64,000 nt of DNA. Source: Cyanophora paradoxa CCMP329 (lineage: Eukaryota; Plantae; Glaucophyta). The DNA is taken from NCBI GenBank assembly GCA_004431415.1, contig QPMI01000449.1, positions 1 to 64,000 of the forward strand, given 5' to 3'. The translations under genes and the position numbers were made by a program. Below the pieces are notes generated by a model. That model was not told the DNA's origin. It did no database searches and worked only from the letters and a program-made list of their open reading frames with translations. Shown in pieces: positions 41,701-44,059 of the stretch (positions are counted from its first letter, which is position 1; the number at the start of each line of letters is the position of its first letter).

Positions 41701-44059
41701 GCCAGAAGATGTCGTCGCTGGAGATGCCGTACTCCCGGGCCCCGGGGCAGTCCGACGGGAACTTGGGGCGCCCTGCGCAATCGCGCGCGGAGGGAAGTCG
41801 ATTTCAGCTTGTCGGCGTCGCGATCGGTCGAGCGCACCGCCGACGGCGATGAGGACGCGCCGCCCGGTGATGCTCATCTGCCGAAACTCCCGCGTCAGTC
41901 CCGCCACCGGCACCAGCACGCTCGTATACAACGGCACCTTGCTGCCGTTGGCGAAGGTGCACTCGACGGTGTGGCGGTCGAGGAAGCGCCCACGGGCGTT
42001 GATGTACTGGACCTTCGCCTTGCCCAGGGCCGTCTCGTACCTGGCCGCGCCGGACGGGAGAGGGCATTATAATTAGCGGGGCGCGGAGATCAAGGCTCAA
42101 GGCTCAAGGGGCAGGAGCGGCGGACCCCTTGTTGAGGCTGGCGATGTGGGCGCCGATGCGCTCGCGCAGGGCCGGCCAGCTGTGGTCGGGCGTCATCGCG
42201 CACCCGCGCCACCCGTACGCCGCCGCGTTGTGCAGGATGTGCTCCCCTGTCCGATTCGCCGCGGCGTCAGCTGCAGGCGACAAATTAAAGGTTGGAACGA
42301 AAGGCTCGCTCGCCCATGATGGCGGCCGTGTGGTAGAGCTTCTTAGGGATGCATCCCACGTTCTGCCGAGGCCGAAGAAGTTAGCGCCTGCAAACGAACG
42401 GAAACGGAACCAAACGAGCGCGCGCACGACACAGGTGCCGCCGAGGCCCCACTTGGTGCCCTGCGGGGAGGGAGTGACGAAGTCCAAAATGGCGACGTGC
42501 TGGTTCAGCTTGGCCGCCTCCTTGGCGGCCGCCAGGCCGCCCGAGCCGCCGCCGATGACGATCAGGTCGTACTGCGCAATCGCGAGAAGAAACGATCAGC
42601 CGGCTCATAAGGAACAAGCCGGCTTATATAAGGGAACAAGCCGTCGGGCCGCGCCTGGTAGCCGTGCTGCCACGTCGGCTCGTTGTCGCGGGCGATGCGG
42701 GTGGGGACCTCCCGCCGCAGCGCCCGCTTCTTCCTGCGCGTGATGATCCAGCGCCGCGTCGCGTGGTACCAGCGGAAGTAGTAGCAGCCGACGCTGCCGC
42801 CCGAGCCCGCGTCAGCCGCCGGCGGCGCTCGAGCTCGAGCTCGGTAAACTAAAGCGAACTAAAGCTCGTCTCACCAGATGTCGAAGAAGGCGGCGAGCCC
42901 GCCGCCGAGGGACATCATGACGAGGGGGAAGGGGAACATCTTGCCGGGGGCCCCGAAGCTGCAAGGCAGGCAGACCCGCGATCAGAAGATCTAGAATTGG
43001 TTCGGAGGGCCGGCGAGCGGGAAAATTCGTCGAAGGCGCACCGGACGCCGAGGACGACGGTGTTCATGATGAGGGCGAGGAGGAACGCGAGGCGCTTGCA
43101 GGAGCTCCCCGTCGGCTGCGGGGGCACGCGCAGCGCCCAGAGCACCGCGTTCGCGATCAGCGCGTACCTGCACGACCGTCGGACGCACAGATCAACTCGG
43201 ATCGATGGGATCGGGGTTCGAAAAGGGGCGCACGGGCTGTAAGGGAGCTGGCCCAGTGTGACGCAGAGGAGAAAGTCGACCTCCTGGACGATGAGGACGT
43301 ACCAGACGCCCTTCAGCTCGGTCAGGACGTGCTCCGCCTCCCACCGGTAGTGCCACCTTCGCGTGCGCACAGGAATCGGAGATCAGAACGATTACGAACG
43401 ACGGAATCAGGATAAGGATGCGGTCGCACCCGGCAACGAGCAGGGTGATCGCAACGAGCATGATCATGCCGGCGCGGAGGCGGATCACGGTGTTGTCGAG
43501 GTGGTGCGGCCACTTGCCAACGGGACCTGGAGCGGCGCGGGCGGGGTCGCGTCAGCGGAATTCAAATTAAAGCCAAGTGCCCGCCGGAAAAGCGCGGGAG
43601 TGCTTTGCAATTGCTCGCCTTCAATCCAGCGGCGCCGCGGGGGCGGGATGCGTTCGGGAAAGTCGAAATCGGCCGAGCTCGAGGGCATCGCGATTTCGAC
43701 CTGCGGTGGAGAGCATGAGGGCCGAGCGTGCATTATGGGGTGTAGAATGGCGCGGAATACAGAATACGCACCATCCCGCCATCGTCTGCCGTGTTGATTG
43801 CGCGGTAGCTCTTCTGCCCCTCTTCCGGATACTGTGCGAGGCCGACGAGCTTCGGGGCCGCCGGCGCCGGCGCGGGATGCATGTCGACATCCGCGAGACC
43901 AGGGACGGCGCGGACGGTGGGCGCTGAGGAGTAGGACGCGGCGCCGGCGTTCCGCCGCGGGCTCGGCGGGGCGGGCGCTTCGCCGCCCGCAACTGCAATG
44001 TTCTTCATCTCCTCATCGTGCTTGTCGGCGGCCACATGGATGCGGCGCGCCGACTGCAT
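38743..44059 (-). CDS. TXNRD: High-MW selenocysteine thioredoxin reductase with N-terminal DUF4395-like membrane domain
   Basis: [20 protein letters not shown]|[21 protein letters not shown]|AAEE; C-terminus GGC TGC TGA GGT TAA (G-C-U-G; UGA at 38749-38751). Upstream exons (42655-44059) splice in frame and encode hydrophobic segments ending AAFFDICVGCYYF. Confidence 0.88.

Follow-up and report, generated by a model that had tools for sequence, protein, structure and literature searches.

High-molecular-weight thioredoxin reductases (TrxRs) are, to our knowledge, soluble enzymes, and the sole well-known domain fusion among them is the glutaredoxin of TGR (TXNRD3). In TGR, the N-terminal domain is reduced by the selenocysteine (Sec) arm of the partner subunit. 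For the protein family DUF4395, we know of no function or structure. We analysed a stretch of 64,000 nucleotides from the glaucophyte Cyanophora paradoxa CCMP329 (assembly GCA_004431415.1, contig QPMI01000449.1, positions 1 to 64,000 of the forward strand; hereafter the window), in which an earlier note had proposed a gene that fuses a DUF4395-like membrane domain in frame to a selenoprotein TrxR. A model of one nuclear gene with 27 exons and 26 introns was obtained on the minus strand, from 44059 to 38743 (Table 1). It was built with the guidance of a homologue and then verified by coordinates, and its predicted product is an 816-residue protein. This protein is composed of four parts: a poorly conserved N-terminus, the four-helix DUF4395 membrane bundle (residues 134-277), a helical linker that is basic and ~40 residues long, and a complete animal-type TrxR with a Gly-Cys-Sec-Gly end. 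It belongs to both the Sec-TrxR family and DUF4395, and is a variant of the design in which an N-terminal redox domain precedes TrxR. As in TGR (for example Schistosoma TGR, PDB 2x8c), a CxxC redox domain stands N-terminal to a complete Sec TrxR ending in GCUG, but here this domain is an integral four-helix membrane domain followed by a long basic linker, and not a soluble glutaredoxin.

The earlier note had claimed that upstream exons splice in frame onto YDLIV through a phase-0 GC-AG intron at 42572-42654, and the sequence bears this out. Intron 7 (42654-42572, 83 nt) has GCGCGG as donor and AG as acceptor, lies in phase 0, and joins ...HGYQ to YDLIVIGGG. Exon coordinates, reading frames and the peptide quoted in that note could all be reproduced, and exons 1 to 7 add up to 939 nt, or 313 codons, in a three-frame reading of 39000-44300. 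A stop codon at about 42596-42598 directly precedes the open frame of exon 8. Only SFLLAIAQ is read between this stop and YDLIV, so that the reported lack of an in-frame Met at this place also holds. The first Met of the TrxR part is located downstream of both the FAD-binding and the CVNVGC motifs, indicating that this TrxR has no independent start. AG acceptors are present in all introns, and GC donors in 4 of the 26 (introns 2, 7, 9 and 24); a GC-AG intron at the junction is therefore not exceptional in this gene.

The same splicing was found independently in a deposited protein. In a full HMMER scan, the query taken from the minus strand of the window at 43044-43355 (exon 4, in-frame intron 4 and exon 5) was 99% identical to an 803-residue protein, EukProt EP00741 Cyanophora paradoxa P013480 (tig00020693_g13017.t1), called P0001 below. 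The first 361 residues of P0001 are identical, residue for residue, to our gene model, and its N-terminal splice pattern is that of the earlier note, including both GC-AG introns and the YDLIVIGGG join. Searches that needed a spliced protein as query were run with P0001 and with P0124 of Cantina marsupialis (see below). The gene models from which P0001 derives were produced with BRAKER1/Augustus trained on STAR-mapped RNA-seq (PMC6704402). Over the segment 38743-40242 of the window, P0001 ends at the Sec UGA, omits exons 22 to 24 and inserts a proline-rich, intron-derived stretch before the last exon. Given this UGA stop, the omitted exons and the spurious insert, the deposited protein is not likely to be the true product. 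Introns 4 (43168-43233, 66 nt), 11 (41878-41937, 60 nt) and 15 (41242-41301, 60 nt) have lengths divisible by three. Introns 4 and 11 contain no in-frame stop, and their retention would add 22 and 20 residues, respectively, with the frame kept. A word search with the read-through of exon 4, intron 4 and exon 5 gave no match, while a word search with region 125-313 of P0001 recovered P0001 alone, within the limits set by query length and word.

Proteins with the same architecture were recovered from other sources. A query spanning the junction (residues 190-440 of P0001) returned four protein clusters carrying both PF14340 and PF07992, from Cantina marsupialis and from environmental sets. In the stramenopile Cantina, the fusion is carried by Trinity transcripts, namely P0004 and its 716-residue sibling P0124, the latter ending in ...KKTSC, exactly where Sec-Gly would come next. 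Three further proteins (P0125, P0007 and P0127, from two JGI metagenomes and one Logan assembly) are each encoded by a single open reading frame (ORF) running uninterrupted from DUF4395 into TrxR. A sixth relative (P0003, contig L001) is a fragment whose downstream part lies beyond the contig end. The fused proteins of Cantina and of the environmental sets all have the motif H-x-[FY]-x-Y-D-L-[IV]-V across the junction, and the Cyanophora splice recreates this motif gap-free. Identity between the Cyanophora gene model and the Cantina protein is 32% over DUF4395 and 60.6% over TrxR, and the linker of the fused proteins is variable and 43-70 residues long. In a quick tree covering residues 1 to ~126 of the TrxR part, coverage filtering retained four fused proteins, which formed one group (Shimodaira-Hasegawa-like approximate likelihood ratio test 97), joined by one N-terminally truncated fragment. 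A single origin of the fusion fits this grouping. The architecture is rare: at the sensitivity used, 5.8 billion proteins contained five such clusters, and a search of genome contigs and metagenome contigs with the eukaryotic alignment gave no confirmed relatives. In the environmental relatives P0125, P0007 and P0023, a Met stands directly before YDLVVIGGG; a reductase-only product made by internal initiation is conceivable for these three proteins, whereas Cyanophora has no such Met. As far as can be judged from sequence, DUF4395 and TrxR form one gene, and the fusion is kept in distant eukaryotes as a distinct clade. The transcripts and uninterrupted ORFs thus agree with the single-gene fusion of the earlier note, which we regard as very probably real.

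The N-terminal domain is, by profile and by predicted structure, a true DUF4395. The Pfam profile (PF14340) aligned to residues 134-277 of P0001 over profile positions 2-129 of 130, scoring 40.8 bits with the whole of P0001 and 44.5 bits with residues 100-313, against a cut-off of 24.5. An exon-by-exon Pfam scan did not reveal any DUF4395 signal, since the single exons are too short. The membrane character that had been proposed was also recovered, as hydropathy analysis detected four hydrophobic segments (~139-157, 172-192, 222-240 and 247-270). An alignment of eight sequences brought together the eukaryotic domains and four plasmid-encoded bacterial DUF4395 proteins, which represent four phyla; it showed R (of N..VR..AG), F (of D-F), S-P, K-R and C-x-G-C to be invariant. 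When 62 sequences were aligned, P, K and R remained invariant, and R, G, D-F and C-x-G-C nearly so. The hallmarks named in the earlier note (R..AG, SP, KR and C.GC) therefore correspond to the invariant positions of the family. An AlphaFold model of the domain based on the 62-sequence alignment reached a predicted local distance difference test (pLDDT) of 85.4 and a predicted template modelling score of 0.75; an earlier run with 6 sequences (pLDDT 50) was discarded. Helices are predicted at 135-158, 166-190, 197-208 (short), 219-241 and 248-263. The long last helix of the model would begin at CVGC (267-270) and run on through the basic linker, in which 12 of 43 residues are Lys or Arg. The best fold match of the model in the ESM Atlas was a DUF4395 cluster (TM 0.72/0.85, root mean square deviation 1.9 Å over 142 residues). 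A protein-atlas feature search also pointed to DUF4395 clusters with a score of 0.80, to be read as a lead only.

No signal-peptide-like segment is present at the N-terminus. Together with the strongly basic linker, and with four spans and the positive-inside rule, this suggests that the N-terminus, the linker and the reductase are cytosolic. In the model, we infer that the N-terminus, the S-P/K-R loop, CVGC and the linker would all lie at the cytosolic face, beside the reductase. In DsbB, VKOR and CcdA/DsbD, which are also small, helical and membrane-embedded, redox-active Cys pairs transfer electrons between partners of the thioredoxin fold and other carriers. However, neither a structural match nor a sequence relation links them to DUF4395, and the predicted place of CVGC is the reductase side of the membrane, not the opposite one. 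Kinship with VKOR, DsbB or DsbD was dropped as unsupported, no such chain being found among the PDB matches, although poor or absent matches do not prove that the proteins differ.

Judged by motifs and profile matches, a high-molecular-weight TrxR of the Sec type makes up the C-terminal part. P0001 matched the Pfam profiles Pyr_redox_2 (186.9 bits) and Pyr_redox_dim (33.8 bits); in the same Pfam analysis of P0001, glutaredoxin (PF00462) gave no match, its position being occupied by DUF4395. The redox-active CVNVGC disulfide motif is present, split over exons 8 and 9 ([13 protein letters not shown]). The gene ends with GGC TGC TGA GGT TAA (38757-38743), which reads Gly-Cys-Sec-Gly-stop and contains the in-frame UGA of the selenoprotein claimed in the earlier note. 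A hairpin resembling a selenocysteine insertion sequence (SECIS) is located 190 nt downstream of the gene end (38552-38494), with an AUGA/AAA/UGA core and a fold of -56 kcal/mol (z -6.3). The TrxR part of the Cantina relative, the closest full-length one, scored 554 bits against human TrxR1. The Gly-Cys-UGA-Gly-stop end, the SECIS-like hairpin and this TrxR1 match together point to an animal-type Sec TrxR. The fused clade is ~55-60% identical to TrxR1 (human or rat; PDB 2zz0, 3ean and 1h6v), and GGGSGG, CVNVGC, the His-Glu region and the GCUG end are present in both. TrxR1 is a soluble enzyme with no membrane domain, whereas the fused proteins form a clade of their own.

In exon 24, one nucleotide appears to be missing from a T-CCCC run at ~39776-39780, where the reading passes from the frame of ...ENFLPE ([15 protein letters not shown]) to the following frame, that of PYHCYAK with the conserved CYAK segment. 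With one X placed at the break, the exon-24 reading aligns gap-free to LPNRQHKCYAK of Cantina. The Cyanophora assembly was produced from PacBio reads with Canu and corrected with Illumina reads, and zero-coverage areas were filled from PacBio, uncorrected (PMC6704402). As the frameshift site is flanked by long poly-C tracts, an assembly indel is plausible.

Table 1. Features of the DUF4395-TrxR gene in the window.
Feature	Position	Strand	Remarks
Exon 1	43772..44059	-	ATG at 44059; 96 codons; Ala/Pro-rich N-terminus, not kept by relatives; identical in P0001
Exon 2	43619..43700	-	conserved motif D-F-x-F-P-E...R-R-W; GC donor (GCGAGC)
Exon 3	43430..43526	-	DUF4395 start ([11 protein letters not shown]), helix 1
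Exon 4	43234..43356	-	helix 2, D-F motif, S-P
Exon 5	43042..43167	-	short helix, invariant K-R, helix 3
Exon 6	42875..42958	-	helix 4; final 2 nt open the first Cys codon of CVGC
Exon 7	42655..42793	-	remainder of CVGC, basic helical linker, end ...HGYQ
CVGC codons	42876-42784	-	split by intron 6
Intron 7	42572..42654	-	GC-AG, 83 nt, between DUF4395 and TrxR parts
Exon 8	42428..42571	-	TrxR start, FAD motif GGGSGG, beginning of CVNVGC
Exon 9	42314..42362	-	NVGCIPKK...; GC donor
Exon 10	42126..42246	-	acceptor as in P0001; spacing fits homologues
Exon 11	41938..42040	-	
Exon 12	41838..41877	-	
Exon 13	41686..41772	-	
Exon 14	41463..41553	-	NADPH-binding region GASYIALE
Exon 15	41302..41388	-	
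Exon 16	41105..41241	-	contains Gly-rich insertion
Exon 17	40812..40912	-	
Exon 18	40685..40721	-	
Exon 19	40544..40605	-	
Exon 20	40415..40450	-	
Exon 21	40301..40339	-	
Exon 22	40186..40242	-	[19 protein letters not shown]; omitted in P0001
Exon 23	40086..40110	-	omitted in P0001
Exon 24	39758..39824	-	GC donor; apparent 1-nt frameshift; omitted in P0001
Exon 25	39377..39478	-	dimerisation domain
Exon 26	39159..39206	-	...GIHPT, catalytic His
Exon 27	38743..38820	-	...KTGC, TGA (Sec, 38751-38749), GGT, TAA (stop, 38745-38743)
SECIS-like hairpin, 3' untranslated region	38494..38552	-	AUGA ... AAA ... UGA

Stand-alone bacterial DUF4395 proteins (~145-240 residues) belong to the same Pfam family and share the invariant R, S-P, K-R and C-x-G-C as well as the predicted fold, but they carry no fused reductase, and a large sulfur-oxidiser subfamily has two further Cys pairs. 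These extra pairs, conserved in this subfamily (L014-L093, mostly sulfur oxidisers), are a C-x-x-C in helix 4 and a C-P-G-G-V-C in the C-terminal tail. Both are missing from the eukaryotic fused proteins, in which the reductase stands in place of the tail. Nine plasmid loci were inspected, three of which have a thioredoxin-fold gene clustered with DUF4395. The gene order is cysK-cysE-trx-DUF4395 on a Mycobacterium ulcerans plasmid, and trx, metallo-beta-lactamase (MBL) hydrolase, TauE (sulfite exporter), DUF4395 and rhodanese on a Microbacterium plasmid. On the Thiothrix subterranea plasmid NZ_CP133216.1 (L004:4525-7750), a GDCCVxC (seleno)protein, DUF4395 and a 777-residue Thioredox_DsbH/DsbD_N protein follow one another; the three genes overlap or abut, and two cytochrome c peroxidases come next. 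A pattern scan of genomes for one DUF4395 subfamily yielded more than 573 loci, carried mostly by sulfur oxidisers. Within 2.5 kb of DUF4395, the 67 loci analysed contained genes for response regulators (20/67), ArsR (11/67), LMWP-type ArsC (11/67), ArsB (10/67), rhodanese (7/67) and the ArsP permease (5/67). The theme of these bacterial neighbourhoods is thiol, sulfur and arsenic stress. In Sulfurimonas and Sulfurovum (L039, L043, L055, L069 and related loci), DUF4395 is found amid ArsR, LMWP-type ArsC, ArsB and ArsP.

The best overall explanation of these observations, which we hold to be somewhat probable, is a membrane selenoprotein TrxR in which the Sec arm relays electrons to DUF4395. 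NADPH would reduce FAD, which in turn would reduce the disulfide of CVNVGC; from the partner subunit, the flexible Cys-Sec arm would then reduce the CVGC disulfide of DUF4395 by a route like that of TGR, and the reduced DUF4395 dithiol would act on a substrate at the membrane surface. A Cys-x-x-Cys at the N-terminus of a helix is a classical redox-active arrangement. Since CVGC is predicted at such a place and takes the position of the glutaredoxin in TGR, reduction by the Sec arm would be its most likely fate. The relay from the Sec arm to CVGC, taken as a step of its own and argued from analogy and model, is a serious possibility that we place just short of probable. The invariant residues would all face the same side of the membrane: Arg where helix 1 begins, Ser-Pro behind helix 2, Lys-Arg ahead of helix 3 and CxGC at the N-terminus of the last helix. 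The basic ones among them and the bacterial neighbours (thioredoxins, rhodaneses and ars genes) suggest as candidate substrate an anion containing sulfur, selenium or arsenic, or else a thiol target in the membrane. More generally, and only tentatively, DUF4395 may be a previously unrecognised membrane dithiol/disulfide acceptor, or 'membrane thioredoxin', whose CxGC is kept reduced by thioredoxin systems and which has been hard-wired to a Sec TrxR in a small eukaryotic clade.

Several results weigh against this explanation. The coding sequence amounts to 2450 nt, one base short of whole codons, and as exon 24 is out of frame as assembled, the locus could be a pseudogene. The hairpin scored 28.6 bits against Rfam SECIS_1 (E 0.008), below the gathering score of 35. 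Searches of the DUF4395 model against the PDB with Foldseek and VIA-align returned only generic four-helix bundles (Z ≤ 8.9) and no solved membrane thiol oxidoreductase. In bacteria, only 5-6 of 80 loci of one large subfamily have a thioredoxin-like gene within 5 kb; neighbourhoods are heterogeneous and only loosely syntenic, and many loci are related to one another. Finally, a complex prediction between the TrxR part and the DUF4395 part of the Cantina protein gave a score of 0.00, a value that weighs neither way on binding.

The alternative that survives best is that DUF4395 is an anchor only, tethering to the membrane a reductase that acts on ordinary soluble or membrane-near substrates (thioredoxin, lipid hydroperoxides or quinones), while CVGC serves an unrelated DUF4395 function. 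The long and variable linker of 43-70 residues would suit such a tether, as would the lack of predicted contact between the domains (the same null score, which gives no verdict) and the bacterial proteins, which work with no reductase fused to them and, in most cases, with no thioredoxin gene beside their own. However, a plain tether does not need ~145 residues with catalytic-looking invariants kept from glaucophyte to stramenopile, and the placement of a CxxC domain N-terminal to the reductase, as for the glutaredoxin of TGR, also argues for more than anchoring; we consider a mere anchor rather unlikely. A further alternative is that DUF4395 binds or conducts an anionic chalcogen or arsenic species (thiosulfate, persulfide, selenite or arsenate), the reductase acting on this species or on a Cys-bound adduct and not by plain disulfide cycling. 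The invariant Arg and Lys-Arg beside CxGC are in line with this role, and so are the neighbouring genes (rhodanese in 7/67 loci and in Microbacterium, TauE, ars genes, the GDCCVxC (seleno)protein and cysK-cysE) and the predominance of sulfur oxidisers in the sampled subfamily. Related Campylobacterota, however, supply most of the ars and rhodanese genes, which are therefore not independent, and no transport-like pore is evident in the four-helix monomer model. Substrate handling of this kind overlaps with the relay from the Sec arm and does not exclude it; as a separate explanation it seems improbable. Lastly, a mis-joined gene pair, or a gene killed by the exon-24 frameshift, is very improbable: the missing base and the exons 22-24 that the public model had to leave out would fit it, but exon 8 offers no start codon, splicing at the junction restores a motif conserved in the relatives, and elsewhere one continuous ORF encodes the fusion. 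Apart from the frameshift, the 27 exons show no damage, the TrxR is 60.6% identical to that of Cantina, and the frameshift falls in a C-run beside long poly-C tracts of a PacBio assembly with uncorrected zero-coverage regions (PMC6704402).

A full-text literature search (DUF4395, membrane-bound TrxR, Cyanophora selenoproteins) did not return any description of the architecture. The enzyme type appears undescribed and rare, although its sequences are already public with automatic Pfam labels. An architecture already widespread and described would have spoken against the earlier note; it proved rare in the searched databases, and no paper on it was found. An integral-membrane Sec TrxR kept in both a glaucophyte and a stramenopile would represent a new way of bringing electrons from NADPH to a membrane surface. 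If the 'membrane thioredoxin' reading is true, the fusion would be the first integral-membrane TrxR, with a direct relay from NADPH to a thiol at the membrane face. The fusion also serves as a 'Rosetta stone' for DUF4395, as it predicts that CxGC is redox-active and served by the thioredoxin system. This prediction is testable in algal or bacterial proteins, and the bacterial carriers include sulfur oxidisers and mycobacteria.

Elsewhere in the window, base composition changes sharply, the GC content being 0.70-0.73 at 20001-34000 as against ~0.50 in the segment 1-12 kb. The segment 54001-56000 has a GC content of 0.74 and a GC skew of +0.38. At 37485-37549, a palindromic microsatellite, short and rich in GATC, gave weak chance matches to several microRNA families on both strands.

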